DNA of 64,000 nt, taken from IMG/VR virus record IMGVR_UViG_3300027816_000052, positions 1-64,000 of that record; one strand, written 5' to 3'. The translations under genes and the position numbers were made by a program. Below are positions 2,182 through 41,164 of this stretch, in pieces. Below the pieces are notes generated by a model, which saw only the letters and a program-made list of their open reading frames with translations, made no database searches and was not told the DNA's origin. The first letter of the stretch is position 1; every line of letters begins with the position of its first letter.

Positions 2182-2257
2182 GCTCCTATAGCTCAGTTGG
2201 TCAGAGCGCCAAGCTTATACCTTGGGTCTGTCACAGGTTCAAGTCCTGTTAGGAGTA
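2182..2257 (+). tRNA. tRNA-Ile(UAU)
   Basis: Cloverleaf: GCTCCTA/TAGGAGT; anticodon arm CCAAG-CTTATAC-CTTGG; T-arm ACAGG-TTCAAGT-CCTGT. Confidence 0.88.
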
Positions 2258-2265
2258 CGAAATAT

Positions 2266-2339
2266 TGTGGGGTGGAGCAGATGGTTAGCTCGGAGGTCTC
2301 ATAAATCTCAGGTCGCTGGTTCAAGTCCAGCCCCCGCAA
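2266..2339 (+). tRNA. tRNA-Met(CAU), fMet-like body
   Basis: TGTGGGG/CCCCGCA acceptor; GAGGT-CTCATAA-ATCTC anticodon arm; GCTGG-TTCAAGT-CCAGC T-arm. Confidence 0.9.
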
Positions 2340-2340
2340 C

Positions 2341-2438
2341 AAAATGTTGATTAGTAGTTTAGTGGTTGAACTAAAAAGAAAATCTGACGCTCAGTAGCAA
2401 TAAATACCACCAGTCAGCTTCGTTCTAATTAACATTTT
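2341..2438 (+). ncRNA. Candidate structured RNA with kissing-loop pseudoknot
   Basis: 14-bp closing helix, two internal hairpins, loop GTGGT complementary to ACCAC. Confidence 0.55.
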
Positions 2439-2480
2439 ATTTTTATTGTTCTTTGACATATTTATCTTAAAAAAATTAAT

Positions 2481-2684
2481 ATGCAAAAAATATCTTTTAT
2501 TAAATTTAATTTTAAAAATGGATTAATTCATTTATTGACATTATTTTTTGGTAGTTTAATATTATTACCAATAACAGGTAATGAGATTTTTGAATTTAAA
2601 ATTTGGTTCATTATTTTATTGTTTCTTAGTATCTTTATGACGTACTTCAATTATCGTGTTTGGAAAAAATTAAAAATTAAATAA
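2481..2684 (+). CDS. Small two-TM membrane protein
   Basis: Two hydrophobic helices; preceded by the ATATTTAT motif. Confidence 0.6.
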   Translation: MQKISFIKFNFKNGLIHLLTLFFGSLILLPITGNEIFEFKIWFIILLFLSIFMTYFNYRVWKKLKIK

Positions 2685-3348
2685 TAATTCTTTGATTTAT
2701 TATGTTTGTGATAATATCAAGATATTTTTGAGAGGTAATCTCTTTAAAATATTTTTGTGCTGATGTATCAATAACACAAAAATCAATTTTTGCGTCATGA
2801 CATGCTTTTGACTTTGATTTATCATTTTCTTGAATTTGATTTAATTTTTTAATGCCATAAATTGGTTCATAGTGAAAAATTCCATTAAGTTCAAATGCAA
2901 TATTTAATGATGGAATATAAATATCTAATTCTGAGTTAATAGCTAATTTATCATTAAATTTGATATCTAGGTTTGGGTATAAAAATTCTAACTGCGATTG
3001 AATCCAAATTTCAAGTTTTGATTTTCTGTTGCCGTGTTTTTTATTTTTATTGTTATATGTTGCGGCACAAGATTTCGAACAAAAATGATTTATAGATCTA
3101 GAAATTTGATTATTTGCTTTGATAAATTTTTTATCACAATTAGTACATGTAACCTCTTTTCTTTTTTTTGCTGACAAACCATTACATTGTATTGAACAAA
3201 AACGTAATTGATTTTTTTGTTTTTCAATATTATATTTAATATGTCTTTTTTCAATATAGAAAAAATTATCACAATATTCACATATTAATCTTAACTTATC
3301 AAAATGTTTTGCATTATAATAATCAAATTCTGAATACGCTTTTTTCAT
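2677..3348 (-). CDS. Putative homing endonuclease (Zn-finger repeats plus Vsr/DUF559-like PD-(D/E)xK domain)
   Basis: CxxC...FCSxxC repeats, then ELDIYIPSLNIAFELNGIFHY and a C-terminal K..K..AC motif. Confidence 0.7.
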   Translation of the reverse strand: MKKAYSEFDYYNAKHFDKLRLICEYCDNFFYIEKRHIKYNIEKQKNQLRFCSIQCNGLSAKKRKEVTCTNCDKKFIKANNQISRSINHFCSKSCAATYNNKNKKHGNRKSKLEIWIQSQLEFLYPNLDIKFNDKLAINSELDIYIPSLNIAFELNGIFHYEPIYGIKKLNQIQENDKSKSKACHDAKIDFCVIDTSAQKYFKEITSQKYLDIITNIINQRIII

Positions 3349-3414
3349 TTATACATATATTTATATATAAATATATTAAATTTAATTTTCGAATCTGAAG
3401 TACTTTGAAATTAT

Positions 3415-3499
3415 GGAGGATCCCACTGGCGCGGTACGTAGTCTTGAAAACTATGAGGTCGGTAATACCGATGTGAAGGTTCGAGTCCATCATCCTCCG
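3415..3499 (+). tRNA. tRNA-Ser(UGA)
   Basis: GGAGGAT/ATCCTCC; GTAGT-CTTGAAA-ACTAT; long variable arm; G73. Confidence 0.9.
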
Positions 3500-3510
3500 C
3501 TAGATAAAAT

Positions 3511-3541
3511 TTGGAAGTTTGAAATTTTAGTTGTATCTTTG
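3511..3541 (+). promoter_or_regulatory. Bacteroidota-type promoter for the ncRNA/tRNA-Thr/Gly operon
   Basis: TTG-N20-TATCTTTG. Confidence 0.8.
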
Positions 3542-3543
3542 TA

Positions 3544-3668
3544 GAGCGTGTGAAGCATGTGAGCTAAGTTATCGAGGTGCTTGGTACGATTCGCGGTCGT
3601 GTTGCGCTGGAAACCATCAAAGGTTAAAAGACGTGAAACCAAGTTAAATGGTAAAATCTGACACATTC
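3544..3668 (+). ncRNA. Candidate structured RNA upstream of tRNA-Thr
   Basis: GCTTGGT/ACCAAGT, ACGAT/GTCGT, TGG-AAA-CCA; imperfect closing stem GAGCGTGT/ACACATTC. Confidence 0.4.
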
Positions 3669-3682
3669 AGCCTTAAATTTAC

Positions 3683-3758
3683 GCCACTGTAGCTCAATTG
3701 GCAGAGCACTAGTTTTGTAAACTAGCGGTTAGCGGTTCGACTCCGCTCAGTGGCTCCA
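3683..3758 (+). tRNA. tRNA-Thr(UGU), CCA encoded
   Basis: GCCACTG/CAGTGGC; CTAGT-TTTGTAA-ACTAG; ends TCCA. Confidence 0.95.
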
Positions 3759-3777
3759 AGAGTTCTTTGAAAAAGTT

Positions 3778-3907
3778 TGAGAAAAAGCGGAAGTACGAAA
3801 GTACGGGAAGATTGTGATAAAAAGAACAAGGAAATAGTCCCTCCCATTGCAGTCACAAGCATAATTGGGTAGAGTGGAAAGGTGAGTCCACGAACCGCTT
3901 TTTCTCA
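3778..3907 (+). ncRNA. Candidate structured RNA A
   Basis: Perfect 13-bp closing helix TGAGAAAAAGCGG/CCGCTTTTTCTCA; GTAC-GAAA-GTAC and GTGGA/TCCAC hairpins. Confidence 0.65.
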
Positions 3908-3918
3908 TTTTACATGAA

Positions 3919-4097
3919 AATATAAAATTAGTGAGCAAAGAGAAAGTGACTTCACCAGTCAGCGTAGTATACAACGGAAGCACGGGCAAGAAAGTAGCAT
4001 GGTAGCTACCTGAAATAAAAATCGATTGCTGGGACAAAACTGAAAACGTTTAATTGGATACCCTTAAAATGAAGATATACCTCACTAACTTTATATT
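3919..4097 (+). ncRNA. Candidate structured RNA B
   Basis: 16/17-bp closing helix; internal TGACT/AGTCA and GTAGC/GCTAC hairpins. Confidence 0.65.
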
Positions 4098-4102
4098 AAA
4101 AA

Positions 4103-4246
4103 TTTGTGGTCAGTACGGATTGACGTACCTAGTAAGCTGGTAAATTACATTACGAAGAAACGCTGAAGCGACTAAGAAATGTACTAATATGTAATTATTA
4201 GTGGGTTGTTGTTAAGTCTTAGTATGTTAGTTTTTAACACCACAAA
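4103..4246 (+). ncRNA. Candidate structured RNA C, pseudoknotted
   Basis: TTTGTGGT/ACCACAAA closing stem, AATTACAT/ATGTAATT, loop-loop ACTAAGA/TCTTAGT. Confidence 0.6.
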
Positions 4247-4250
4247 AAAA

Positions 4251-4324
4251 GCGAGTGTAGCTTAGTTGATTAAAGCGCCGTCCTTCCAAGTCGGAGATCG
4301 TCAGTTTGAGTCTGACCACTCGCT
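4251..4324 (+). tRNA. tRNA-Gly(UCC)
   Basis: GCGAGTG/CACTCGC; loop CTTCCAA; U73; T-loop TTTGAGT slightly atypical. Confidence 0.88.
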
Positions 4325-4410
4325 CACTAATCCCCTCTAACCTCTGAAGAAATTCAAGTTATTGGGTAAAACAGTTTCTTTTCATATTTATAGAATAAAC
4401 ATCTATCAAT

Positions 4411-18546: not shown

Positions 18547-19368
18547 ATGAATAATTTTGAATTTTTAAAGGAAGTACTATCGGTACCAAGTTCTTCATAT
18601 AAAGAACATTTAATGATTGAGTTTTTGGAAAAATGGTTGACTGAAAATAATATCCCCCATTATACGGATGATTTTGGAAATGTATATGCAACAAAAAAAA
18701 CGAACTTAAAGGAAGGTGAGTTTTTTCCTTGCGTAGTGTCACACACCGATACCGTACATGATATTAGTAATATTAATATTTTAGAAAAGCAACTTCCGGA
18801 TTCAGATAATATTATTAAATTAGCTCTAACGTCTGTAAATGATGATGGAATACCTAACGGTATTGGTGGTGATGATAAATGTGGTGTTTATATTTGTCTT
18901 AGACTTTTAAAAGATTTACCGAATGTAAAAGCGGCGTTTTTTGTTAGTGAAGAAATTGGTTGTAGGGGTTCATTAAATGCTGACCCAAATTTCTTTAAAG
19001 ATGTTGGTTATGCGATTCAGTTTGATGCACCAGAAAACTGGATGGTTACATATACGTGTATGGGCGTGGAATTATTTGATATGAAATCAGAATTTTTTGA
19101 TAAATGTCATAATGTTCTTACCGAAAACTTTAACCATAAAAAAGATTATCTTAAACATCCATATACAGATGTTTACGCATTAAGAAAGAAATTTGACTTT
19201 GCTTGCATTAATATTTCATGTGGATATTACAATTATCACAGACCAAATGAATATGTTGTAGTTGATGATGTTGAGAACGCATATGATGTTGGAGTAAAGA
19301 TGATTAGTGATTTGGGATGTTGTAGTTATATTTTTAATAAATCAAAAAAAACAAAATTTATGTTATAA
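18547..19368 (+). CDS. Zinc metallopeptidase (M28/M20/M42 clan)
   Basis: SHTDTV, GIGGDDKCG, SEEIGCRGS, QFD and YH metal-ligand motifs. Confidence 0.85.
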   Translation: MNNFEFLKEVLSVPSSSYKEHLMIEFLEKWLTENNIPHYTDDFGNVYATKKTNLKEGEFFPCVVSHTDTVHDISNINILEKQLPDSDNIIKLALTSVNDDGIPNGIGGDDKCGVYICLRLLKDLPNVKAAFFVSEEIGCRGSLNADPNFFKDVGYAIQFDAPENWMVTYTCMGVELFDMKSEFFDKCHNVLTENFNHKKDYLKHPYTDVYALRKKFDFACINISCGYYNYHRPNEYVVVDDVENAYDVGVKMISDLGCCSYIFNKSKKTKFML

Positions 19369-19369: not shown

Positions 19370-19398
19370 GAAAAGGGGGAAACTTATTTCCCCTTTTC
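19370..19398. terminator. Bidirectional intrinsic terminator
   Basis: GAAAAGGGG(G)A...TCCCCTTTTC between convergent genes. Confidence 0.75.
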
Positions 19399-21570
19399 AA
19401 TTTTAACCTTATCTTTTACGAATTTTAATTTATACTTTTTCATCTCAATCATCTCACCCTTTAGAATTTCCTCGGATATAAAATCTTCCACATATTCTTG
19501 TATTGCTCGTTTTAATGGTCTTGCACCAAACTGAGGGTCAAATCCAACTTTAGCGATGTGCTCGACCAATGAATTATCATATTTGATAAAATATTTTAAT
19601 TTATTTAATCTTTCTACCAATCTATCCAATTCAATCTTAACAATTTCCTTGACATCATCTTCTTTTAATGTATTAAAGACAACAACCTCATCAATTCTAT
19701 TTAAGAATTCTGGAGCAAAGAAATTCTTCATTTCTTTTTGAATTATATCTCGTTTAGCTTCTTCATTAGCAAATGAGTTTTTACCGAAGCCAATTCCAGA
19801 ACCAAAATCTTGTATTTTTTTAACACCAAGATTTGATGTTAAAATAATTAATGAGTTTCTAAAGTTTATTTTTCTACCTAAACTATCAGTTATAAAACCT
19901 TCGTCTAAAACCCTCAATAAGATTGAGAATATTTCTTTATTTGCTTTTTCAACCTCATCAAATAAAATAACCGAATATGGTTTGTTTTTTACTTGTTCGG
20001 TTAATTGACCACCTTTATCATAACCAACATAACCGGGGGGAGCACCAACCAATCTAGATACGCTATGTTTTTCTTGATATTCTGACATATCAATTCTAAT
20101 TAAGTTATCTTCGCTACCAAAGATTTCTTTCGCCATCTGTTTAGCTAAATGAGTTTTACCAACACCACTATTACCAAGCAATATGAACGCACCAATCGGT
20201 CTATTTGGGTCTCTAATACCTAATCTATTTCTGCGAATAGCTTTCGCCATTTTTGTAATTGCTTCTTGTTGACCAACAACTTTTTCACCCACATTCTTTT
20301 CCAAATTCAATAAATTCTTTGTATCGTCAGTGTTTAATTTGTTAATTGGTATTTTTGTCATTGTTGATACAACATCATAAACCAATTCAGTTGTAACTTC
20401 TTTTCTTTTGGTTAAAAGAGTTTCTTCAAATTTCTTTTTTTCTTCATTAAGTTTATCGACAATCTTTTTTTCTTTATCCCTTAATTCCGCAGCTTTCTCA
20501 TAATCCTGTTGTTTTACAACGATTAATTTTTCTTCCTTAATTTTATGTGCTTCATCTTTAAGGTGGTTAATAATTTCCGGTAATTCAATATCTACTTGAC
20601 TTCTAGCACCAACTTCATCAATAATGTCAAATGCTTTATCGGGAAATTCTCTGTCAGTTATATATCTATCAGCAAGGTTTACACATAAATCTAAAACCTC
20701 ATCATTGTAACTTACTCGATGATAAAATTCATATTTATCTTTAACGTTTTTTAAAATTTCTAATGTTTCTTCTTTTGAGGGTGAATCAACAACAACTTTT
20801 TGAAATCTTCGTTCTAATGCACCATCTTTTTCAAAATTTTCACGATATTCATCTAGCGTTGTTGCACCGATACATTGAATTTCTCCTCTTGCTAATGCTG
20901 GTTTAAAGATGTTTGACGCATCTAATGACCCAGATGAATTACCAGCACCAACTAATGTATGAATTTCATCAATAAAGACAATTATATCGGGGTTATTTTG
21001 TAATTCTTCAAGAATAACTTTAAGACGTTCTTCAAATTGACCTCTATATTTTGTCCCAGCAACAATAGATGTTAAATCAAGTAGTACAATTCTTTTATTT
21101 TCAAGGTTTCTTGGACATTCACCTAGATAAATTTTCATAGCAAGACCTTCAACTATGGCAGTTTTACCACAATTATGTGAAGATATGCCATTTGTTAAAT
21201 ATTTTCTTTCCTCATCTAATACTTCTAAATCAAAAGTATCGTGAACCCCAATATATTCTTTTTCAATAACATCATGTAATTGATTATCGTCATACCAAAC
21301 TAAATCTCCAATATTAATATTCTTTAATGATAACCAATATGTGTTATTCTGTTCTTCAACTAAATTATTTGCACAATCAAAAGATGTCTCAACTAAATGG
21401 GATTCTGAACCAGAAAGCTCAACGTTATTTGATAATGTTATTTTATAACACTCTTTTTTTGTTTTTTTAAACAAATTACCAATTAATTTGTAACCAGATG
21501 GGGTCTTTACTTTATAAGTTCCCCCGTTTTTTTCAACATCGTTAAAAAAATCTTCAATTTTTATTTTCAT
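19384..21570 (-). CDS. clpC: IntC (133 aa) fused to the C-extein of a ClpC-like AAA+ unfoldase
   Basis: ...SESHLV...TFDLEV...YLTNGISSHN|CGKTAIVEGLA; IVFIDEIH, ALERRF, UVR coil, GNSGVGKT, ILFDEVEKA, FGARPLKR. Confidence 0.92.
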   Translation of the reverse strand: MKIKIEDFFNDVEKNGGTYKVKTPSGYKLIGNLFKKTKKECYKITLSNNVELSGSESHLVETSFDCANNLVEEQNNTYWLSLKNINIGDLVWYDDNQLHDVIEKEYIGVHDTFDLEVLDEERKYLTNGISSHNCGKTAIVEGLAMKIYLGECPRNLENKRIVLLDLTSIVAGTKYRGQFEERLKVILEELQNNPDIIVFIDEIHTLVGAGNSSGSLDASNIFKPALARGEIQCIGATTLDEYRENFEKDGALERRFQKVVVDSPSKEETLEILKNVKDKYEFYHRVSYNDEVLDLCVNLADRYITDREFPDKAFDIIDEVGARSQVDIELPEIINHLKDEAHKIKEEKLIVVKQQDYEKAAELRDKEKKIVDKLNEEKKKFEETLLTKRKEVTTELVYDVVSTMTKIPINKLNTDDTKNLLNLEKNVGEKVVGQQEAITKMAKAIRRNRLGIRDPNRPIGAFILLGNSGVGKTHLAKQMAKEIFGSEDNLIRIDMSEYQEKHSVSRLVGAPPGYVGYDKGGQLTEQVKNKPYSVILFDEVEKANKEIFSILLRVLDEGFITDSLGRKINFRNSLIILTSNLGVKKIQDFGSGIGFGKNSFANEEAKRDIIQKEMKNFFAPEFLNRIDEVVVFNTLKEDDVKEIVKIELDRLVERLNKLKYFIKYDNSLVEHIAKVGFDPQFGARPLKRAIQEYVEDFISEEILKGEMIEMKKYKLKFVKDKVKIEKGK

Positions 21571-21576
21571 TTTAAA

Positions 21577-21870
21577 TTATAATATTTCAATATTATGCGT
21601 ATTAACATCAGAAATTTTTTCAACCTCTATGTACGTATCACCAAGTACACACCCCGGTTCACCAATTATAATTGGATTATTTTTCTTTCTTCTAGATAAG
21701 ATTTGAGCAATTCTGTTAATTTCATTTTCTCTACCAATAACAGGGTCAAGTTTTCCTTGTTCTGCCATTTTTATCAAATCTTTACTAAAATTATCTAAAA
21801 CCGGTGTTGAACCATCTTTTGTTTTTTCGGAACCAGATTTTTGGTTGCTATTTTCTTCAAATTCTATCAT
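21577..21870 (-). CDS. clpC: N-extein (73 aa) of the ClpC-like ATPase fused to IntN (24 aa)
   Basis: [33 protein letters not shown]|[10 protein letters not shown]...EIL-stop. Confidence 0.9.
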
Positions 21871-21986: not shown

Positions 21987-22547
21987 ATGAAAAAGTTAAT
22001 CATTATTCTAAGTTTATTTCCGAGTATTGTTTGTTCTCAAACAAGATTGGATACGCTCATTTTAAATGAGGTGAATAAATATCGAGCGGAAAATGGTTTA
22101 AATCTTTTAACGTTCACTGCGCAAGGTCAATGTGTTGCTGAAAACCAAAAAGACTATATGTTGCTAACTGGTTGTGTTAATCATGAACAAATTGAGGATG
22201 TTGATGATTTTGATGTTGAACCAGATTTTGCAAAAAGAAATTTTAAGTGTGGAATTGATACATTGGATACCAAAACAGTTTACATGGAAGTTCTTGTTGC
22301 TGTGTTGGACACAACAAATGCTTCATTAGAGGATATTGCAATTAAAGCTGTAAATGGTTGGAAAAGTTCAGAGGGACATAACTTCGCAATCTTATTACCA
22401 ATGATTAACTATGTTGGTGTTTCTAGCGGTACTAACCATAAACTAGTTGAATACTACGAAGACCTTTACACGGGTGAACTTACTATGGTTGTTACAGAAC
22501 AAAAATATTGGTTTGTATCTTTAAATGCTTATAATATTTATTATTAA
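21987..22547 (+). CDS. Secreted CAP (SCP/Tpx-1) domain protein
   Basis: Signal peptide; LNEVNKYRAENGL...H...AVNGWKSSEGHNFAIL...VGV. Confidence 0.8.
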   Translation: MKKLIIILSLFPSIVCSQTRLDTLILNEVNKYRAENGLNLLTFTAQGQCVAENQKDYMLLTGCVNHEQIEDVDDFDVEPDFAKRNFKCGIDTLDTKTVYMEVLVAVLDTTNASLEDIAIKAVNGWKSSEGHNFAILLPMINYVGVSSGTNHKLVEYYEDLYTGELTMVVTEQKYWFVSLNAYNIYY

Positions 22548-31016: not shown

Positions 31017-31031
31017 GTTTATTATTTCTTG

Positions 31032-31106
31032 TAGTTCCTTTCGGACTCGAACCGAAAACCTTTTCCACGTCAAGGAAACGCTCTGAACCAATTGAGCTAA
31101 GGAACT
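31032..31106 (-). tRNA. tRNA-Val(GAC)
   Basis: AGTTCCT/AGGAACT; TTTCC-TTGACGT-GGAAA; TTCGG-TTCGAGT-CCGAA. Confidence 0.9.
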
Positions 31107-31208
31107 GTTAACAAAGGGGGTTAATGATAACCCCATTTGTTTTCTACCAACCTAAATCTTTCGAAACTTTGCCATGTCACCTGTAAATAGTGACACTTAT
31201 TCAGAAGT

Positions 31209-31225
31209 TGGTGGACCCGGTGAGG
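31209..31225 (-). pseudogene. 3' remnant of an Ala-type tRNA
   Basis: Minus strand CCTCACCGGGTCCACCA resembles the 3' end of tRNA-Ala at 35879; no 5' half. Confidence 0.45.
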
Positions 31226-31235
31226 CTCTTTTTTG

Positions 31236-31305
31236 TACTCCGTGAGAGATTCGAACTCTCAGCCTTCTCGTTAGGAGTGAGATGCTCATCCAGTTGAGAC
31301 GGGGC
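31236..31305 (-). tRNA. Degenerate tRNA-Arg(CCU)
   Basis: T-arm GAGAG-TTCGAAT-CTCTC and loop CTCCTAA present; nt 8-10 missing; C3xA70 mismatch. Confidence 0.6.
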
Positions 31306-31310
31306 ATGAA

Positions 31311-31814
31311 CTATCTATATCTGTTCTCCACGTACCAATATATGGCTTTATTTTTCACCTCAACACGTTCCTTGACTATACCACGAACTCCAGATGAAGT
31401 AGCATATTTTCTTGATAGAGACTTGTCAGACAATATAAGTTGTATTACATATCCACTCCACACACTATCATAGAGTCCGTCCGACTCCACAACTTCTTCC
31501 TCTTGTGTTGTTATTGGAGAGAATTCTGGAAGTCTACGAAACTCTTTCTCTGTTCCATCTTCCGCGTAGAAGCGGAAACCATCACTCTCGGCAATAATGG
31601 TCAAATCACCTTCCATAAGATCTATCAGACAAGATTGTATACCAACCCTGACCTTGTATAATCCAGATTCAAAATGCTTAGTGATTTCTCCTTTTCCATA
31701 TTCAACTTCTTTCAATTGATGATCTATTACAACAATTCTTAGATCTTCACTAGGAGCTTTCACGCGCAACTCATACTCGACAATGGTTTTAGTTGGTATT
31801 GTGGTCACTCTCAT
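31311..31814 (-). CDS. Hypothetical protein
   Basis: 167-aa ORF. Confidence 0.65.
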   Translation of the reverse strand: MRVTTIPTKTIVEYELRVKAPSEDLRIVVIDHQLKEVEYGKGEITKHFESGLYKVRVGIQSCLIDLMEGDLTIIAESDGFRFYAEDGTEKEFRRLPEFSPITTQEEEVVESDGLYDSVWSGYVIQLILSDKSLSRKYATSSGVRGIVKERVEVKNKAIYWYVENRYR

Positions 31815-31878
31815 TTGGCAGCGTCTTTTATGATGTGCTTGACCTCTTCGCTGGAGAAGCCCATTATGTGCTTGAGTA

Positions 31879-33072
31879 TCATTTTTGTTTCAAATCTAAG
31901 TTAAGATCTTTAGCCGATTTCATCATCATAATTTCCATGAAATTTGCCGCCGCATTGCTAGAACCACTTGAGTTACCACTCATATATTGAGGAACAACAT
32001 TTCCTTGATATTTCGAGAAGGCGTTTGCCCAATATTCTTGTGATTTAAGCCAAGCATCCAACTTTTGCTCAAGAGCGCCATTAGCAGACATTACAAGACG
32101 TTTCTTTTCAGCTTCACCTTGACCTTCAAGAATTTGTTTTTCTTTATTAAGTCTAGCAGTTTCAACATCAAGTTCAGCAACTCGTTTACGCGATTCAGCC
32201 TCAGTCACTTGTTTTGCTTTAATAACCTCTTGATCCCACTTAGCTTTAGCTGCTTCAGCTTCACCTTGTTTTGCGATGGTAATAGCATCTTGTTCGGCTT
32301 TTTTAGAATTTGCAATTGCCAATTGTACACTCATTAATGCTTGTTGTTGATTTTGAATTTGCTTTTCAACGGTCGCATCATATGTAATACCATTAATTGA
32401 AATATTATAGAGTCTAATTCCATATCCAGCAATTGGTGATTCTTCTTGTCGAATTGGTTGACCGGGAGTCTTTTCAACAATCTCAACTTTGGTTACTAAT
32501 TTTTCCTCACCAGTCAATGGATCAGCTTCTTTAACCTCAACTTGTTTAGTTTTATATACACCTCTAGAAGCTTGATCTTCAATATAGAAAATCAAATCAT
32601 TTCTTTTTTCCGCATACGACTCTTTAGATGTCATAAGCGGTCCAGTCATGTAAACTGATTTTTCAATGTTAGTTTTAATTAACTGATTCTCCAACGCTTC
32701 TTGCGAACCAAATGTTGAGTGTAATTTAATAATTTGTTCAGAAGATAAGGGAAGATCATAACGAACCGATCCTGAAATTGTTGCATGTCCACCATCATTC
32801 CATTTTACGGCAATTGATTTATCTGTTTCACCCTCCTCTTTTGGAGAAGAAAACCAAAATTGATTTGATTTACGATAATGTGTTGCCCTACCAAATAATT
32901 GCCAAACCCAACCCGGTTCAGTATATGTATGAAGATTACCATCAAATGGGTCTTGAATAACAACAACTTCTCCAGCATCAACATCTTCCCAAATAAGGGG
33001 AACAAAGATTAGACCAAGAACAATAAATACGCCAATAACAATTGCACTAATAGATTTTTTAAAGTTTTCCAT
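31879..33072 (-). CDS. SPFH/Band 7/prohibitin family membrane protein
   Basis: N-terminal TM, V.AGEVVV...G...EPGW, SPFH core, AE-rich coiled coil. Confidence 0.85.
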   Translation of the reverse strand: MENFKKSISAIVIGVFIVLGLIFVPLIWEDVDAGEVVVIQDPFDGNLHTYTEPGWVWQLFGRATHYRKSNQFWFSSPKEEGETDKSIAVKWNDGGHATISGSVRYDLPLSSEQIIKLHSTFGSQEALENQLIKTNIEKSVYMTGPLMTSKESYAEKRNDLIFYIEDQASRGVYKTKQVEVKEADPLTGEEKLVTKVEIVEKTPGQPIRQEESPIAGYGIRLYNISINGITYDATVEKQIQNQQQALMSVQLAIANSKKAEQDAITIAKQGEAEAAKAKWDQEVIKAKQVTEAESRKRVAELDVETARLNKEKQILEGQGEAEKKRLVMSANGALEQKLDAWLKSQEYWANAFSKYQGNVVPQYMSGNSSGSSNAAANFMEIMMMKSAKDLNLDLKQK

Positions 33073-33078
33073 GTTTTT

Positions 33079-33345
33079 TTAAATTTTTGTTTTGTTTTTA
33101 ATTTTATTAATTTTATTTACAGTTTGATTAACTTCATCATTCACCACATTATACTTCTCAACCGCCTTATCAACTTTTTCTTCCAGTTCATCTATCGTTG
33201 ATGAGTGTTGGATTTTTTCTTTATTTTTCTTTTTAAGAAACCAAAAAAATTCTAATTTGGGAATAAAAAGAGGTAGAATTATTTGTGTTATAATTGTTAG
33301 TATGCTTATAACTGTTAATAAAAATATTATAATTATTTTAGCCAT
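33079..33345 (-). CDS. Membrane-anchored coiled-coil protein
   Basis: N-terminal TM; adjacent to the SPFH gene. Confidence 0.6.
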   Translation of the reverse strand: MAKIIIIFLLTVISILTIITQIILPLFIPKLEFFWFLKKKNKEKIQHSSTIDELEEKVDKAVEKYNVVNDEVNQTVNKINKIKNKTKI

Positions 33346-33550
33346 TTTGGTTTTTAAATTTAAAAATTATATCATTTATATCATTTCTTATTGATTCCAT
33401 ATCATCTATGTCAAGATAAAATGAAAATGAATCATCACCTTGACTACAGGTTAACCATATTTCATCATCACCACCTTGAATAAAAAATTCCAAGTCTTTA
33501 TCTCCTTGTGAAAATTTATATGTTTTTATTGTTTTCATTTTATAGTACAA
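33338..33550 (-). CDS. Hypothetical protein
   Basis: 70-aa ORF; the start may be MKTIKT. Confidence 0.55.
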   Translation of the reverse strand: MYYKMKTIKTYKFSQGDKDLEFFIQGGDDEIWLTCSQGDDSFSFYLDIDDMESIRNDINDIIFKFKNQNG

Positions 33551-33578
33551 ATATAGTATATGTTTTTAACATAAACAA
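33548..33578 (-). promoter_or_regulatory. Bacteroidota-type promoter
   Basis: TTG-N20-TATATTTG. Confidence 0.7.
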
Positions 33579-33579
33579 A

Positions 33580-33765
33580 TCAAATGAAAATTTCACCAAA
33601 TAAGGAAATATATTCATTTTTTGGTATTTTACAATAAACATCACCAACCCAAAAAAATACATCGTCACCAATTTCATTCGGTTCGGTGATATTCCATTTT
33701 TTAACAATATTGACAGGTATTTTGTCGTAATCTAAATTAGGGAAAGCAACATGTACGTAGTCCAT
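33580..33765 (-). CDS. Hypothetical protein
   Basis: 61-aa ORF downstream of a promoter. Confidence 0.55.
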   Translation of the reverse strand: MDYVHVAFPNLDYDKIPVNIVKKWNITEPNEIGDDVFFWVGDVYCKIPKNEYISLFGEIFI

Positions 33766-33781
33766 TTTTTTTTAGTTTACA

Positions 33782-33812
33782 CAAAGATAATAACAAATAT
33801 TTAAATTTCCAA
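33782..33812 (-). promoter_or_regulatory. Bacteroidota-type promoter
   Basis: TTG-N20-TATCTTTG. Confidence 0.75.
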
Positions 33813-33844
33813 TAACTGATAATATTTATTTTAAAAGTTGGTAT

Positions 33845-34630
33845 ATGAGAAATCTAATCAAAAAAGTTTTGCGTGAATTTGTATTAAAAGAAGCGGAAGA
33901 GACAGACCACGCAAAATGTCGTTATGTTAATAGAGTTGCGAATGAAAGAAATCATAAAACAACAAATGTTAAGGACAAAATTGGTAAAGAAGGAATTGAA
34001 AACATTAAATTTATCATCGAACTTGTTAAAAAAATAGATTTTCCAAAAAATATCGATATTGCAATTAATTTAGCTTATTCACCATCAAGAGATGTTAACA
34101 ATCCAGAAGGTTTTGAAAACGCAAAAGGATTTTATTTTAATGACCCTAATGATAATTGTACTAAAAAAGAAAATATTGAACCTAGCTGGGGACATTATTT
34201 GTGGTTAATAATAAGAGATAATTCTATCACAACAATAATGATTCATAGAACCAAACCAAAAGATTTAAGAGAGGTTAATATAGATAGATTAATAAATAAT
34301 TTAAATAACTATTTTGGACTTAATATTAAAGAAAAAGAACTTTCGTCGGCTGAAAATTTAAAACAAATAGATTTAACAAATGAGAGACTTTTCTTTAAGA
34401 TGATTAGTAAACCAGAAAAAAAATCTGAGGAATCTCCTTTAAAAAATGAAGAAATACTTCTTGTTAAACAAAAAAAATATGTTATTGATAAAATTAAAAA
34501 AACAATTCATCCAAAAAATAAACCAAAAGAAATACAGAAAATAGAAGAATTTATCAATTTAATTTTAAATTTAGAACCTTTTACCCCTGAAGATGAGAAA
34601 GCTATTGAATACTTAATTTCTTTGATTTGA
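33845..34630 (+). CDS. Hypothetical protein with LIKKVLRE...LKE leader
   Basis: 261 aa; ATATTTAT upstream. Confidence 0.7.
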   Translation: MRNLIKKVLREFVLKEAEETDHAKCRYVNRVANERNHKTTNVKDKIGKEGIENIKFIIELVKKIDFPKNIDIAINLAYSPSRDVNNPEGFENAKGFYFNDPNDNCTKKENIEPSWGHYLWLIIRDNSITTIMIHRTKPKDLREVNIDRLINNLNNYFGLNIKEKELSSAENLKQIDLTNERLFFKMISKPEKKSEESPLKNEEILLVKQKKYVIDKIKKTIHPKNKPKEIQKIEEFINLILNLEPFTPEDEKAIEYLISLI

Positions 34631-34918
34631 TTTTATAATTAATCTGTCATAATGCGTGAAATAACCCCGTTTATTAGCCTCATCTAATATTTCATCAGTT
34701 GTTGGTCTTGGTTGTTTTTCCAAATAATATTTGATATTTTTTTCATCCATATATTCTCTAATGGTTTCTTCAACATTACTAAATAAGCGATAAATATTAT
34801 CAGCTAAAATATCAGCATCAACCAATCCGGTTACATTTTCCATCATATCATCAAAAACAAAATTTGATGATTCATCCTTTTTAATAATCAAGATATAATA
34901 GTCGTATTTCATCTGCAA
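34613..34918 (-). CDS. Hypothetical protein
   Basis: 101-aa ORF. Confidence 0.6.
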   Translation of the reverse strand: MQMKYDYYILIIKKDESSNFVFDDMMENVTGLVDADILADNIYRLFSNVEETIREYMDEKNIKYYLEKQPRPTTDEILDEANKRGYFTHYDRLIIKSNQRN

Positions 34919-35364
34919 TGATAATCCGCCGCTTTAGTTGCGATTTGAATATTTGGTTTTACATTAACTTGATACCCCAATGAATTCGCCCACCCCTTTG
35001 TTGCACTGATTAATTGATTACTTTTATAAAATTCATCCTCATTATAATCCATATCTAATTCAAGTTTTAGACTGACATTAACTTTGTTTTTAAACCATTC
35101 CGCAATTTCAATCGTGCTTTCAGCTTCCTTCCAAAGTCTAGTCCATAAATCATTAATTCTATTGATTCTTTCTTTTGTGAAAATATAATGGACACCCCTA
35201 GTACCATAACGATAGGCGATAACGGAAACATAAACGGTTTCATTTGACACGTTTTGTGAATCAGTACCGATATGGATTTTTACATCAGGATTTTCCCTGA
35301 TAACCTCAAGAGTATGTTTTACAACATCTACTGGAGTTCCATCTAATTTTCTAAACACTTTCAT
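34909..35364 (-). CDS. RNase H-like YkuK (DUF458) family protein
   Basis: IHIGTDSQ...YVSVIA...L..EAESTIEIA...D.N...A..AD pattern. Confidence 0.8.
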   Translation of the reverse strand: MKVFRKLDGTPVDVVKHTLEVIRENPDVKIHIGTDSQNVSNETVYVSVIAYRYGTRGVHYIFTKERINRINDLWTRLWKEAESTIEIAEWFKNKVNVSLKLELDMDYNEDEFYKSNQLISATKGWANSLGYQVNVKPNIQIATKAADYHCR

Positions 35365-35376
35365 TTTATAGTTATT

Positions 35377-35733
35377 TTATTCGTCTACACTGATGAGGGG
35401 GAATTCAATTTTAAGTCTATAATGAATAAAATCATTCATATCTTCCACTAAATCAAAATATTTTCTATAAGACTCACCATTTGACATTTTTATTTTTAAA
35501 AATGGTTTGTAATAAACAACATAATCCTCAATATATAAGTTTTTGTTTTTAAGAATCTCTTCTTCTGTTATAAAAAAAGTTCCATTGTAATACCAATCAG
35601 CGTAATAAAATCCTTCTTTTCTTTCTTTACAAAATAAACTTTTTTTTCTGCGATTTTGCCAAACAAATTTATCATTTTCTATTTTTTCAAATTTTCTAAT
35701 ACTACAAATTTGTTTGATATTAATTTCTTCCAT
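35377..35733 (-). CDS. Hypothetical protein
   Basis: 118-aa ORF; TATCTTTG box at 35750-35757. Confidence 0.6.
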   Translation of the reverse strand: MEEINIKQICSIRKFEKIENDKFVWQNRRKKSLFCKERKEGFYYADWYYNGTFFITEEEILKNKNLYIEDYVVYYKPFLKIKMSNGESYRKYFDLVEDMNDFIHYRLKIEFPLISVDE

Positions 35734-35878
35734 TTTTAAAAGTTTGGTACAAAGATATGAAAAGTTTTATGAAAAAAAAAATTGCAACGATTTTAGCCTA
35801 CGTTAATATTTTGTGGGAAGAGCTTATCGTTATTAAGTTTCGCTTATTATACCAACACAATTTTTAATTCATAATACA

Positions 35879-35954
35879 TGGTGGACCGGAAGGGATTCGA
35901 ACCCTCATCCTCCTGAGTGCAAATCAGGTGCTCATCCAGTTGAGCTACCAGCCC
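35879..35954 (-). tRNA. tRNA-Ala(UGC), CCA encoded
   Basis: GGGCTGG/CCGGTCC with G3:U70; CCTGA-TTTGCAC-TCAGG. Confidence 0.95.
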
Positions 35955-36063
35955 ATGTTCCCGTTTTTCTTCATCATTTAGTTCACCACCCAGATGAACA
36001 AGTGGTGGATTTTGCTTTTGGAAGTCTGCATTACAGACCGTCACCACGGGAAAACCAACGCAG

Positions 36064-36138
36064 TAGTTCCTGTGTGACTTGAACACACGCCCTTTCGAAT
36101 GTAAATCGAACGCTCTAAACCAACTGAGCTAAGGAACT
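36064..36138 (-). tRNA. tRNA-Val(UAC)
   Basis: AGTTCCT/AGGAACT; TTCGA-TTTACAT-TCGAA. Confidence 0.9.
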
Positions 36139-36146
36139 ATATTTCG

Positions 36147-36218
36147 CACCCCCTGAAGAATTCGAATCCTCACCAACGATGTTGGAGATCGTTACTCTAC
36201 CAATTGAGCTAAAGGGGT
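36147..36218 (-). tRNA. tRNA-Trp(CCA)
   Basis: ACCCCTT/AGGGGGT; ACGAT-CTCCAAC-ATCGT; G73. Confidence 0.9.
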
Positions 36219-36228
36219 ATGTATTTTG

Positions 36229-36304
36229 GGTGAATAACGAGACTCGAACTCGCAAAAATCCGGGACCACAATCCGGAGTGTATACCAATTCCACCATATT
36301 CACC
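36229..36304 (-). tRNA. tRNA-His(GUG) with encoded G-1
   Basis: G-GTGAATA/TATTCAC-C; loop TTGTGGT. Confidence 0.9.
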
Positions 36305-36312
36305 ATAATTCG

Positions 36313-36391
36313 TACTCCCGGTGAGAATCGAACTCACACCCTTTCGGATCTGTTCCTAAAACAGACGCGGCTACCGTTACGCCACAGGAGT
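36313..36391 (-). tRNA. tRNA-Leu(UAG)
   Basis: ACTCCTG/CGGGAGT; TCTGT-TTTAGGA-ACAGA; variable arm. Confidence 0.9.
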
Positions 36392-36402
36392 GTTTAACAT
36401 CA

Positions 36403-36433
36403 CAAAGATATAACTTTATTTTCTTATCTCCAA
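36403..36433 (-). promoter_or_regulatory. Bacteroidota-type promoter for the Leu-His-Trp-Val-Ala tRNA run
   Basis: TTG-N20-TATCTTTG. Confidence 0.8.
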
Positions 36434-36442
36434 ATTAAACTG

Positions 36443-36514
36443 AGGTCGAAGTGAGAATCGAACTCACGTAAGAAGTTTTGCAGACTTCCGCCTAAACCAC
36501 TCGACCATTCGACC
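36443..36514 (-). tRNA. tRNA-Cys(GCA)
   Basis: GGTCGAA/TTCGACC; GAAGT-CTGCAAA-ACTTC; U73. Confidence 0.92.
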
Positions 36515-36700
36515 TTACTTTTCACCTAATTTTCTAATAATACCTCCCTTAGCTTCATACCAAGTACCCTGATAATTAAATTCAAATCCGGTATCTCTCA
36601 TACAAATACCCATAAATTCACCGTCTCTTGTTTTTAAACCAACCCCTGAAAAAACATCTTCAAGAATTATTTCACCGTTTTCATCTGTTGTTAATTTCAT
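36515..36700 (-). CDS. Small hypothetical protein (start re-called at MKLTTD)
   Basis: The longer call overlaps tRNA-Arg. Confidence 0.6.
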   Translation of the reverse strand: MKLTTDENGEIILEDVFSGVGLKTRDGEFMGICMRDTGFEFNYQGTWYEAKGGIIRKLGEK

Positions 36701-36717
36701 AATTTTAATTTTTTTTG

Positions 36718-36789
36718 TATCCCCCGAAGGATTCGAACCCTCACCAACTGAGTCGAAATCAGGTATGCTATCCATTACACTAGAGGGAC
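36718..36789 (-). tRNA. tRNA-Arg(UCG)
   Basis: GTCCCTC/GGGGGAT; CCTGA-TTTCGAC-TCAG; GAGGG-TTCGAAT-CCTTC. Confidence 0.85.
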
Positions 36790-37049
36790 TTTTTCTCTTT
36801 TCTTTTTTTCCATTCTACAGCAAGTGCTGCTCCAATAAAAGCGCCTAACATTGCAGCACCAAATAAACGTGTATCATTTACATAATTTACAGTGGTGAAA
36901 GCACCAAATAAAACAATTAATGCTGACCATATTCCGGATGCGATAGTTTTTCTTTCCTCCACTTTAATAAAATATAAAGTCCATGCAATATCAGCTAAAA
37001 TCATGGAAAACATAACCAGCAAAAATTTTAATTCAAAGGGTATATTCAT
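36780..37049 (-). CDS. Small three-TM membrane protein
   Basis: Three hydrophobic helices. Confidence 0.65.
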   Translation of the reverse strand: MNIPFELKFLLVMFSMILADIAWTLYFIKVEERKTIASGIWSALIVLFGAFTTVNYVNDTRLFGAAMLGAFIGAALAVEWKKRKEKKSL

Positions 37050-37492
37050 CTTTTTAATAATTTATCACATTTATTTTTCCAATTTGATGAGAGACATGAA
37101 ATTGGTGTTACTTTTGTAAGTTGATTAATTAATCTAATTTCTTGTGGATTATCATCCAAATGAAATACAAAATCATTTCCATTCTTTTTAAACCACCAAG
37201 CCTTTGGGTCGTGGTTTGTAAAAATCACTCGTTCCCTTGGGATTCCTAAATCTTTCGCCACCAAAAACAAATCTTCTTCATTTGACCACCAAAGAACATC
37301 ATCGTCTCTTTTAAAAGTTTCATCATCAGGATATTTCTTTCTGAAAAATTCTTTTGGATTTTCCGGTCTTGAGGTAACAATCCATACCTCAATGTTGGAA
37401 TCTTCAATTAATTCCTTACAATAATTTTGTATGAACAGCGAATGACCAAGACAATCATCAAAATCAAAACTTACTTTTTTCATGCTAACCAA
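37046..37492 (-). CDS. HAD-superfamily phosphatase/nucleotidase-like protein
   Basis: VSFDFDDCL, VWIVTSR and HLDDN motifs. Confidence 0.75.
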   Translation of the reverse strand: MVSMKKVSFDFDDCLGHSLFIQNYCKELIEDSNIEVWIVTSRPENPKEFFRKKYPDDETFKRDDDVLWWSNEEDLFLVAKDLGIPRERVIFTNHDPKAWWFKKNGNDFVFHLDDNPQEIRLINQLTKVTPISCLSSNWKNKCDKLLKR

Positions 37493-37782
37493 CGAATTAA
37501 ATATTTTGCTTGCATTTGAGATGTAAAATCAGCCTCACCCATATCTGTAACAGGAATTTCAAAACTTATCACTTCAGTATCCTCACCACCATCTCCCAAA
37601 AATAATGAATAATAAGCAACACCGAGTCTGATTTTATCAAAAAACGCTATTGGATTGTTTTTATATAGCATTTTTTTAATTTCGTTTTTTCTTATTGTAT
37701 TTAATTTTTTATCCATTTTATCTAAAGTTATTTTATCAACGCTATCCATTGCTTCTTTATATAATTCTTCGTCTGTCTTCAT
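37480..37782 (-). CDS. Hypothetical protein
   Basis: 100-aa ORF. Confidence 0.6.
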   Translation of the reverse strand: MKTDEELYKEAMDSVDKITLDKMDKKLNTIRKNEIKKMLYKNNPIAFFDKIRLGVAYYSLFLGDGGEDTEVISFEIPVTDMGEADFTSQMQAKYLIRWLA

Positions 37783-39296
37783 CGTATTAAATTAATATTA
37801 CCAATTTTATTAATTAAGTTATTAGCTATAATTCCGCTAAATTTATAAACATAAACACCATTCTGACAATTAAGCCCATCCCATGATTCGTTTTGATTGG
37901 TAAATTCATAAATTTTCTCACCCCAACTATTATAAATTTGCATTTTAAAATTTTCAATTTTTGAAATTGTTGTTACTTTAAATGAATCATTTATATTATC
38001 ATAATCGGGTGAAAATGTGTTAGGAATATAAATATCTCCACAAATTTCTGAATAAATTTCTAATGTTGTTAAATCGCCAAAACAACCAAATTCATTTATC
38101 TCATAAACACTTAATATGTTTTCAAAATTAGAAATGTTTGGTAAATTTATTGTTATAGTATTTTGTGTCAAATTTAATGTATCTTGATTTAAAATCCAAA
38201 TATATGAAGAATTTATATTACCAGTTGTTAAAAATTGTAAAGTTCTATCGAATTCTGAGCAATTTACAAAACTATTTTCACCGATAATAATAACATCTTC
38301 AGGATTTGGATTCACAACAACTAATATCGAATCGTTGTTTCTACAACCAAAAGAATCAATAAATGTATATTCAACCCAATTTGTTCCAAATTGTGGTAAA
38401 TAATTAGGACCAATATTCCAAGTACCACCAATAGGGAATGCTTGCATTTGAACCGGTGAATCATTAAAACATAGTGTGTCAACAGGATTAATTAATACTA
38501 CAGGTAATTGATTTACGTTTACAGTAAAAATAGTTGTATCTATACAATTATTAATTGTTTCTTCAATAATACTAATTTGTTGAGTCCCTATATTATTCCA
38601 AATATTTATTTGGGGATTACCTGTATAAAAAATTGAGTTATTTGTTGGATTTGCTAATTCATGAATTGTCGTATCCCCAAGACATACGGTTTGGACCAAT
38701 GGGGTTATTGGATTACTTTCAAAGTCTAAAGGAATATTGGTACCATTAAATAAATTAAATGGTGATAGATTACAGTTATTATTTCCCCAAGATCCCCAAG
38801 TACCGTCAGCACCAGCGGTTATTTGAATTATAATGTCCTCAGAGGAACATGTCTCAACAACTGTGGTTGTAAAACAAAAATTCCATGTACAATTTCCAAA
38901 ATCACCCCAATCATTACCGGGATTTCCATCAATAACACCACCTTGATTTGTTTCAAAAAACCAACCCGGTCCAGCAGAAATACCCGTTGATGATGATGTT
39001 ACCGTACCAGAAATCCAAACCCAATTACCAGAACCACCATTACAATTGGTAGGTGATGCTTGCGGAATAGGGGGTGTTAAAGAAGGACTTAGATTAATTT
39101 CAAATCCCTCAACCCAATTTGAACTAACGTTCAAACCGTTCCAACCATTCATTGTATAACACACATTTAAAACAGTTCCACTAGCGTATTGACCATTAAT
39201 TGGGGTTGGGTTTATTGAAAAACTTTCAATCCCATTACATTGATTAAACGCTAAATTACTAATTAAAGTAAAAATTATTAATAATACTTTTTTCAT
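37779..39296 (-). CDS. Secreted protein with gliding-motility-associated (T9SS type B) C-terminal domain
   Basis: Signal peptide; Ig/PKD-like repeats; C-terminal IYIPNTFSPDYDNINDSF...IYNSWGEKIY...WDG...GVYVY...GNINLIR. Confidence 0.85.
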   Translation of the reverse strand: MKKVLLIIFTLISNLAFNQCNGIESFSINPTPINGQYASGTVLNVCYTMNGWNGLNVSSNWVEGFEINLSPSLTPPIPQASPTNCNGGSGNWVWISGTVTSSSTGISAGPGWFFETNQGGVIDGNPGNDWGDFGNCTWNFCFTTTVVETCSSEDIIIQITAGADGTWGSWGNNNCNLSPFNLFNGTNIPLDFESNPITPLVQTVCLGDTTIHELANPTNNSIFYTGNPQINIWNNIGTQQISIIEETINNCIDTTIFTVNVNQLPVVLINPVDTLCFNDSPVQMQAFPIGGTWNIGPNYLPQFGTNWVEYTFIDSFGCRNNDSILVVVNPNPEDVIIIGENSFVNCSEFDRTLQFLTTGNINSSYIWILNQDTLNLTQNTITINLPNISNFENILSVYEINEFGCFGDLTTLEIYSEICGDIYIPNTFSPDYDNINDSFKVTTISKIENFKMQIYNSWGEKIYEFTNQNESWDGLNCQNGVYVYKFSGIIANNLINKIGNINLIR

Positions 39297-39462
39297 TTTT
39301 TATAAAAAATTAAGAGTTTAAACCACCACTTCCACCACATGAATTTTAATGTTAAAAGACCTTCTGGGTCATGGTAGTATATGATTGTTGGAATTAAAGG
39401 TTTATGGTCCTCGATAATAAATCGCTTTGACCTATCTGTTCTAATTTTCATGTTTGTTAATT

Positions 39463-39735
39463 TTATCGTTTACAATAATTCCATATTTCTTCCGCTGTAT
39501 TCCATTCCGAACCAACGTTTAACATACCGATTGGGTCTTCTTTAAACCACATTCGTTCTTTCCATTCACCAGTACCATTTAATCTAAAATAACTTATAAT
39601 TGAGAGTGAGATATTACTTGGTTCTAGTTCATTTGGGTCATTTGCGGAATTACCAATCCAATGGTCGATAAATCCATCTTTACAATAAATTCGTCGAAAT
39701 TTAACCCACCCTTCTTGTAGTTTTTCGGTTTTCAT
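39463..39735 (-). CDS. Hypothetical protein
   Basis: 90-aa ORF. Confidence 0.55.
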   Translation of the reverse strand: MKTEKLQEGWVKFRRIYCKDGFIDHWIGNSANDPNELEPSNISLSIISYFRLNGTGEWKERMWFKEDPIGMLNVGSEWNTAEEIWNYCKR

Positions 39736-39989
39736 ATAATTTCTAATGATATTAAACTCATAAATCTATCATGTGAGTCTAAAGAATAATAAATTCTAAC
39801 TTTTTGACCTTGTTCACTTATTAATTCTTTAAAATGTTTATGAATTAAAATTTTAACATCTTTATTTATCACCATAAATAAATGATTTTCTTTAAAATCA
39901 AGTTCAGATGGAATTTCTGTGTAATAAACATTTTTAATAATCAACTCAATAAAAGGGAATTTGTTTGTGTATGATGTTTCAATATTCAT
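39732..39989 (-). CDS. Hypothetical protein
   Basis: 85-aa ORF. Confidence 0.55.
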   Translation of the reverse strand: MNIETSYTNKFPFIELIIKNVYYTEIPSELDFKENHLFMVINKDVKILIHKHFKELISEQGQKVRIYYSLDSHDRFMSLISLEII

Positions 39990-40005
39990 TATTATTAATT
40001 TTTAG

Positions 40006-40079
40006 TTGTCCCACTCTGACTCGAACAGAGAACCTCCACATTATCAGTGTGACGATCTAACCAATTGATCTATGAGACA
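40006..40079 (-). tRNA. tRNA-Ile(GAU)
   Basis: TGTCTCA/TGGGACA; TCACA-CTGATAA-TGTGG. Confidence 0.92.
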
Positions 40080-40321
40080 ATAAGTGGTTATTTTATCGCT
40101 TTTATCCCTTGATCAGAGGGGAAGTGCTCGTAAAATAACCAAAACCAAACTTCAAATATCATTATATGTTCTATATAAAATTCGACAAAAGATAAACCCT
40201 AAAAAGCAACAAATCAAATTTATAATGGTAACATCATAAGATTGGGGATATAATATTTGTGTATATACACCAGCTAGGAATAAGGTAATGTAAGATAATA
40301 CTTTAAGTACGTGTTTCATTT

Positions 40322-40789: not shown

Positions 40790-40800
40790 AAAAGAAATTG

Positions 40801-40872: not shown

Positions 40873-40878
40873 TTATTG

Positions 40879-41090: not shown

Positions 41091-41094
41091 ATTT

Positions 41095-41158: not shown

Positions 41159-41164
41159 ATATTG

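Follow-up and report, generated by a model that had tools for sequence, protein, structure and literature searches.

The locus described here raises the question of whether a phage gene whose P-loop is interrupted by intein sequence, and whose intein is in turn interrupted by a stop codon and a new start codon, is naturally split in two or only appears so. It lies within the first 64,000 nucleotides of the IMG/VR record IMGVR_UViG_3300027816_000052 (hereafter the window), on the minus strand throughout, and consists of an N-piece gene (21577-21870) followed by a C-piece gene (19384-21570), which together encode a ClpC-like AAA+ ATPase. The evidence presented below makes it very probable that these genes carry the two halves of a genuine, naturally split class-1 intein lodged in the Walker A motif of the first nucleotide-binding domain (NBD1), that this arrangement derives from a fractured gene, and that the mature protein would be produced by trans-splicing. 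A first-pass annotation of the same DNA had drawn the gene boundaries and the intein coordinates exactly, to the base, and had proposed a natural, atypically split intein at this site, a proposal borne out by the conserved break, the variable spacers, the selection acting on both halves and the existence of an intein-free allele.

The N-piece open reading frame (ORF; 97 aa) comprises a 73-aa N-extein (21652-21870), which runs from the start of NBD1 to ...IIIGEPG, the first half of Walker A, and a 24-aa N-terminal intein half, IntN (21580-21651), composed of a 15-aa block-A core that opens with Cys1 (TGT, 21651-21649) and a 9-aa tail that contains an invariant His at position 20 of IntN. A TAA stop (21577-21579) ends this gene, and a spacer of six nucleotides, TTTAAA (21571-21576), separates it from the ATG (21570-21568) of the C-piece ORF (728 aa). 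The latter comprises the 133-aa C-terminal intein half, IntC (21172-21570; MKIKIEDFF ... GISSHN), which carries blocks B, F and G, and a 595-aa C-extein with its stop codon (19384-21171), which reads CGKTAIVEGLA... and thus starts with Cys+1 (TGT, 21171-21169) followed by GKT, the second half of Walker A. Joining the exteins, as the first-pass annotation had anticipated, would rebuild GEPGCGKT, a sequence that conforms to the Walker A motif (GxxxxGK[ST]) and has the same length as the GEPGVGKS of intein-free homologues. The latter were found in two huge phages (LR756502 and LR745206; L001 and L002), whose ClpC-like genes belong to the same extein family and have the same domain order as the window gene (67-70% nucleotide identity over the aligned parts), and differ from it in being intein-free and in reading GEPGVGKS at Walker A. 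The N-extein aligns with the residues that precede GEPG in these uninterrupted homologues. The insertion point lies between residues four and five of the NBD1 Walker A motif.

The stop, the six nucleotides and the ATG share one frame in the window, as had been pointed out along with the caveat that a contiguous mini-intein of ~160 aa might only seem broken through a read or assembly error, or might have acquired a nonsense mutation recently. When the first 140 residues of the 728-aa product served as query in a homologue search, 126 protein clusters were recovered, 58-99% identical over those residues and ~727-750 aa or ~503 aa in length, and 118 of the 120 clusters listed began at the same residue, with the start pattern M[KRQE]..I..FF. 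DNA-pattern scans of the IMG/VR and JGI/ENA metagenomes provided 49 split locus entries, representing 29 distinct sequence versions, in which IntC was always 133 aa and IntN 24 aa in every version but one (26 aa). From the IntN stop to the IntC ATG, the spacer measured 6, 7, 11, 18, 24, 27, 29, 71, 121, 301 or 1192-1214 nt, with all three frames represented and the spacers of 7, 11, 29, 71, 121 and 301 nt out of frame; since the spacers of the relatives vary in both length and frame, the in-frame arrangement is a coincidence of the window locus. L003, assembled independently from another metagenome, was base-for-base identical to the window across the junction, TAA included; the window's own contig (L004) was excluded as independent evidence. 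One contiguous relative does exist (L014), as an error or nonsense mutation would lead one to expect, but what sets it apart is the replacement of 1242 nt with 13 nt rather than a sense codon in place of the stop, and many relatives carry a gene of 390 aa between the halves. The comparative data therefore give such an artefact a likelihood close to nil: with an independent assembly, a conserved start, variable spacers and purifying selection all in agreement, the split is genuine, and the caveat can be set aside as excluded. The comparison of homologues that had been suggested as a check thus found the break conserved at the same residue, with spacers variable in length and frame and, in many loci, an intervening gene.

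The residues expected of a class-1 intein were all present. Cys1 followed GEPG directly in all 29 distinct loci, and the S-x-x-H of block B, the D-L-E-V of block F (DTFDLEV in the window), S-H-N and Cys+1 were invariant columns in a 15-sequence family alignment, with blocks B, F and G lying where they had been placed initially. Both intein halves are under purifying selection: the ratio of non-synonymous to synonymous substitution (dN/dS) was 0.17 for IntN (0.10 in the core and 0.35 in the tail, calculated from 28 distinct nucleotide versions of the 24 codons) and 0.15 for IntC, at a synonymous divergence near saturation (pS ~0.6). These values bear on the alternative that the halves are inactive relics, that is, separate products that never splice, or the remains of a dead ClpC pseudogene. 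Splicing is a prediction and Pfam does not recognise the intein, as this alternative would have it; even so, Cys1, S-x-x-H, the block F Asp, the terminal His-Asn and Cys+1 are invariant despite synonymous saturation, the constraint extends to the 24-aa IntN, the length of IntC is constant, and conservation spans the whole extein even though its NBD1 would lack an intact Walker A if left unspliced, which makes inactivity quite improbable.

The fold was assessed on an AlphaFold2 (AF2) model of the contiguous intein of L014, with the IntC rows as alignment. The model (pLDDT 91.2) is a confident prediction of a HINT fold, with a strand at residues 12-17, a turn, a strand at 22-27 and a helix at 28-38. 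Its top Foldseek match in the PDB was VidaL (6vgv; E=4e-11, TM 0.82/0.90, rmsd 2.1), followed by the gp41-1 and DnaB inteins, and the top 50 matches consisted of 45 intein structures and five HINT-type bacterial-intein-like (BIL) domains. The initial Met of IntC aligns with model residue 24, within the second of these strands and ahead of the helix; in the model, the break thus falls within the first beta-hairpin and immediately precedes helix alpha-1. A phmmer search of the PDB with IntC gave the gp41-1 intein as best match (E=3.5e-5) and VidaL next, and the alignment to VidaL begins at the start point of IntC. Two natural atypical split sites have been described, S1 after beta-2 (VidaL, 16 aa; PolB16, 15 aa) and S2 after alpha-1 (AceL-TerL, 25 aa; GOS-TerL, 37 aa), and a 2026 paper named five natural atypically split inteins with an IntN of 15-37 aa (PMC13014065). 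The modelled break corresponds to the S1 position, in agreement with the resemblance to VidaL proposed at the outset, and the window pair, with 24 aa in IntN vs 133 aa in IntC, falls within this range.

The gene found between the halves in other members of the family offers an explanation for how the intein came to be split. About half of the related loci have a spacer of ~1200 nt that holds a free-standing ORF of 364-399 aa (~390), whose stop, in the relatives examined, overlaps the ATG of IntC or falls a few bases beyond it. This ORF had no significant Pfam match and no PDB sequence match, and its PHROG match to a 'Holliday junction resolvase' nuclease was weak (E=7e-4 to 2e-3). The C-terminal domain of its AF2 model (pLDDT 82.6) was closest to the catalytic domain of I-Bth0305I (3r3p; probability 0.98, TM 0.60 to the target, E=0.3) and then to Vsr, which is suggestive of a homing endonuclease of the I-Bth0305I/Vsr-like kind, the endonuclease family of Dassa et al. 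2009 (PMC2677866). A conserved hairpin (TGATATTTAT..GGT..GGTA..TACC; z ~-2.5) lies between the IntN stop and this ORF (L005:3793-3831, L031:1994-2032, and past the IntN stop in L050), and resembles the translational-control hairpins found upstream of endonuclease genes in fractured genes (PMC2677866). According to the fractured-gene model, an invading free-standing endonuclease gene provides the stop of the upstream half and the Met of the downstream half (PMC2677866). Applied to this family, a homing-endonuclease-like gene of ~390 aa would have inserted itself into the first hairpin of an intein that already occupied the P-loop, and would have brought the upstream stop and the downstream Met with it, an origin proposed because the intervening coding sequence overlaps the start of IntC in the relatives examined.

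A tree based on IntC plus 600 nt of extein placed cassette-bearing loci in all clades and short-spacer loci at scattered tips, a distribution that implies six or more losses independent of each other, and the 71-nt and 121-nt spacers retain the 3' end of the intervening ORF. In the closest relative of the window (L050; ~86% nucleotide identity) a cassette spacer of 1192 nt stands exactly where the window has its 6 nt, and homology resumes at the ATG. The intervening gene has thus been lost repeatedly, and the window, as judged from these alignments, represents the end state after loss, a site from which the ~1.2-kb cassette is cleanly gone. Its 6-nt spacer makes it the most compact loss product, and with no endonuclease gene between the halves it is a derivative of a fractured gene rather than a fractured gene itself, equivalent to 'step III' of Dassa et al., the state that follows loss of the endonuclease gene (PMC2677866).

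The only contiguous intein in the family (151 aa; L014:2062-2544, minus strand, the same as L053, IMGVR_UViG_3300023179_007836) was present in one contig. There, 13 nt coding for KICQ take the place of 1242 nt of its closest relative, L031, comprising the tail of IntN, its stop, the endonuclease gene and the Met, and the invariant His of the IntN tail is absent. The contiguous form as the ancestral state was ruled out, given that L014 nests beside an endonuclease-bearing split relative deep within the split clade; it is probably a secondary re-fusion. The IntN tail would then be an addition specific to the split state. We tentatively consider, at somewhat less than even chances, that the family may preserve an entire life cycle at a single site, with entry of the homing endonuclease gene into the S1 hairpin of a P-loop intein, fracture, repeated decay and loss of that gene, and re-fusion in L014, the IntN tail with its invariant His being a clasp specific to the split form and acquired once the gene had been fractured. 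Endonucleases would in that case have a second natural landing site in the HINT fold, at the atypical split sites, and the pair of 24 aa and 133 aa, possibly even the 15-aa core, would be a naturally optimised tool for semisynthesis.

According to the explanation favoured here, the gene would be expressed as two polypeptides, one with the 73-aa N-extein and the acidic 24-aa IntN, the other with the 133-aa IntC, basic over its first 50 residues, and the 595-aa C-extein. Association of IntN with IntC would complete the HINT fold, and protein trans-splicing would yield a 668-aa ATPase with the P-loop GEPGCGKT restored, while unspliced products would have an NBD1 without an intact Walker A. The net charges of the halves are complementary (-4 for IntN and +6 for residues 1-50 of IntC), and similar charge complementarity has been described in other split inteins. 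A single terminator-like hairpin occurs on the minus strand here (19376-19393), at the end of the second gene, where it overlaps the ClpC-like stop codon (19384-19386) and the end of the coding sequence; none was predicted between the halves, and no structure was predicted for the RNA of the IntN/IntC junction. Since the halves are adjacent, 6 nt apart and with no predicted terminator between them, they are probably co-expressed, and IntC may be translated by re-initiation 6 nt past the stop.

Another way to obtain the product would be for the in-frame TAA to be read through, or for the ribosome not to be released there, giving a contiguous precursor that splices in cis; the shared frame, the distance of only 6 nt and the absence of a further stop would permit this. 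Yet most relatives have out-of-frame spacers, additional in-frame stops or a whole gene between the halves, and the standard bacterial code leaves the long ORFs of the window unbroken, so that read-through seems very improbable.

The first-pass annotation had further suggested that trans-splicing might act as a switch for the timing or stoichiometry of the unfoldase. This would be compatible with a naturally split intein derived from a fractured gene, and it could account for the retention of the split state in nearly all members of the family and for the invariant IntN-tail His that the contiguous variant lacks. The position of the halves on the same strand, 6 nt apart and without a predicted terminator in between, makes separate control unlikely, however; invasion, decay and loss of the endonuclease would explain the split state without any benefit; and the occurrence of related split inteins in P-loops of unrelated ATPases points to homing at a specific site and not to regulation particular to ClpC. 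An adaptive switch is therefore unlikely and was left unsupported by the analysis, the overall pattern being that of the relic of a selfish element. Once the gene had been fractured, selection for a working ATPase would keep both halves in place, and the split would persist with no regulatory role.

Several observations weigh against a functional split intein of fractured-gene origin. Trans-splicing is deduced from conservation and the spliced product is predicted from the sequences. A Shine-Dalgarno sequence was not evident ahead of the IntC ATG, 6 nt past the stop. The intein was recognised from its motifs, the PDB phmmer search and the AF2 model with its Foldseek matches; the Pfam intein model gave no report for either window ORF at E<=1, leaving IntC undetected, and the sequence similarity to solved inteins was modest (that of the gp41-1 match above). 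The structural model covers L014, the intein of which is 57% identical to that of the window, and the packing of the 9-aa IntN tail is extrapolated from its position mapped on this relative's model. The assignment of the intervening ORF as a nuclease, in turn, rests on the Foldseek match at E=0.3 and the weak PHROG match. With these points taken into account, a split intein that splices in trans was still considered very probable.

Comparison with described systems showed that the kind is known, an atypically split intein that is the relic of a fractured gene; what is new is its host protein, the family itself, the tail of IntN and how complete the evolutionary series is. Among split inteins, VidaL (PDB 6vgv) is the best structural match to the contiguous member of the family and shares with it the Cys1 chemistry and the S1 split (PMC13014065); its C-extein starts with SGK, so that it too is probably a P-loop insertion. 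It differs in sequence (~21% identity) and in its shorter IntN (16 aa), the window IntN reaching 24 aa through its conserved 9-aa tail, and the window further has a ClpC-like host and a Cys at position +1. PolB16 OarG (PMC10189870) is likewise a natural S1 split with a very short IntN (15 aa), but it lacks a catalytic cysteine (Ser1/Ser+1), resides in a PolB polymerase and was a weaker structural match (Foldseek rank 39). AceL-TerL (25 aa) and GOS-TerL (37 aa) have in common with the window pair a short IntN and long IntC, a phage origin and cysteine dependence, the window and AceL-TerL IntN lengths being almost the same (24 vs 25 aa), but they are split after alpha-1 (S2; PMC13014065) and are hosted by the large terminase subunit, whereas in the window that helix belongs to IntC (S1). 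The fractured genes of Dassa et al. (gp41-1, NrdJ-1, IMPDH-1 and others; PMC2677866) are alike in their phage context and, as far as the relatives of the window are concerned, in an endonuclease gene between the halves, a hairpin ahead of it and an end that overlaps the downstream start codon, and one of them, gp41-1, was the best PDB sequence match of IntC. They differ in that, with one terminase case excepted, they are split canonically, with an IntN of 88-105 aa and an IntC of 33-54 aa, whereas the endonuclease of the window family landed in the first hairpin; their hosts are enzymes of DNA metabolism, and that of the window is a Clp ATPase. A partial coverage of the literature found no ClpC or Clp intein of this kind, which is weak evidence of novelty.

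The host protein was assigned from its domains. The two window ORFs matched the Pfam families AAA, AAA_lid_9, AAA_2 and ClpB_D2-small (E from 5e-19 to 4e-62), and the joined exteins contain both Walker A and both Walker B motifs, together with a GIGFG loop in the second nucleotide-binding domain (NBD2). In the C-extein, the remainder of NBD1 is followed by an AAA lid with a weak UVR-like match, by NBD2 with an intact Walker A, and by D2-small. Two AAA+ modules with AAA_lid_9 and ClpB_D2-small are the domain make-up of ClpC and the Hsp100 class-1 proteins. No Clp_N repeat domain was matched by Pfam in the window ORFs, the N-extein being just 73 aa long, and Clp_N is also absent from the intein-free phage homologues; with this domain missing, 'ClpC-like' is the right term. 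The GIGFG loop is a candidate IGF-type loop for docking of ClpP, and no ClpP was detected among the 10 mid-sized window ORFs that were scanned. A gene for an M20-like peptidase (18547-19368, plus strand; phrog_4191, E=2e-38) is convergent to the ClpC-like gene and adjoins its 3' end, and L031 and L032 likewise have a gene there, of 273 aa, that faintly matches Pfam Peptidase_M20; a functional link between unfoldase and peptidase may exist.

The intein of the window appears to be one branch of a broad and mostly undescribed group of S1-split inteins that target P-loops. An exhaustive phmmer search with IntC returned 78 representatives at E<=1e-3, and many of the distant relatives (35-50% identity) start with the intein a few residues ahead of the I..FF strand and end in SHN/[CTS]GK[ST], the mark of insertion in Walker A. 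Their exteins, according to Pfam, belong to single-ring AAA proteins, other ClpC-like proteins and a superfamily 1 (SF1) helicase. Proteins P0122-P0192 include dozens of such distant S1-split relatives in Walker A motifs, and P0130, P0139 and P0158 each have one more intein, which is contiguous and precedes a conserved Walker B-like motif, DEIEK. About 15 close relatives, those of the ~503-aa class, have a second split intein in the Walker A motif of NBD2 (GVGK/C...SHN/T), the domain that is uninterrupted in the window. In one of them (L005:5001-9034; IMGVR_UViG_3300042197_003333) the second intein has a 31-aa IntN and an IntC of ~148 aa ending in SHN/T, and a different ORF of 406 aa (phrog_22677) lies between its halves, leaving ClpC in three pieces.

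Few split inteins have an IntN so short that it can be made by peptide synthesis, and the family adds a cysteine-dependent pair of 24 + 133 aa, possibly useful as a tool for protein engineering and semisynthesis, the contiguous relative of which is structurally closest to the fast VidaL. More than 100 natural variants are available for screening, and the natural contiguous version suggests that the last nine IntN residues may be dispensable. With these findings the fractured-gene model would also take in the S1 site and an ATPase of protein quality control, and in phage metagenomes atypically split inteins look far more frequent than one would expect from the few that have been characterised.

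The window forms one end of a 256-kb contig (31% G+C), so that the phage genome is at least 256 kb, and it contains T4-like portal, terminase and major head genes. The 64 kb also hold 22 tRNA genes in two clusters, at 2182-4325 on the plus strand and 31031-42026 on the minus strand, Ile-tat, Met, Trp and His among them; such tRNA sets are typical of jumbo phages. When 15 kb of the window were compared with GenBank phages by megablast, no match was obtained, and a scan of genome contigs with the DNA pattern of the family gave 0 matches, with no prophage and hence no clue to the host from this source. The host is probably a member of the Bacteroidota, because a 505-aa protein encoded at 37779-39296 (minus strand) ends in a CHU_C type IX secretion signal domain (E=3e-14).

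Other features of the window were recorded in passing. The T4-like portal gene (52559-55699, plus strand; 1046 aa) appears to contain a large contiguous intein from Cys339 onwards (...LPGA/CIDLNT...), with a match to Pfam Intein_splicing (E=3e-8, below the gathering score) and a match to an HNH endonuclease PHROG at aa 448-535; a canonical HN[CST] C-terminal junction was not seen in this candidate, the end of which is thus undefined. Divergent from the IntN gene, a gene at 21987-22547 (plus strand) encodes a 186-aa protein with a signal-peptide-like hydrophobic N-terminus and a CAP (cysteine-rich secretory protein) domain (E=3e-9). Directly past the major head gene, a 490-aa ORF (61551-63023, plus strand) matched PHROGs for endonuclease VII-like and Mom-like DNA modification proteins.

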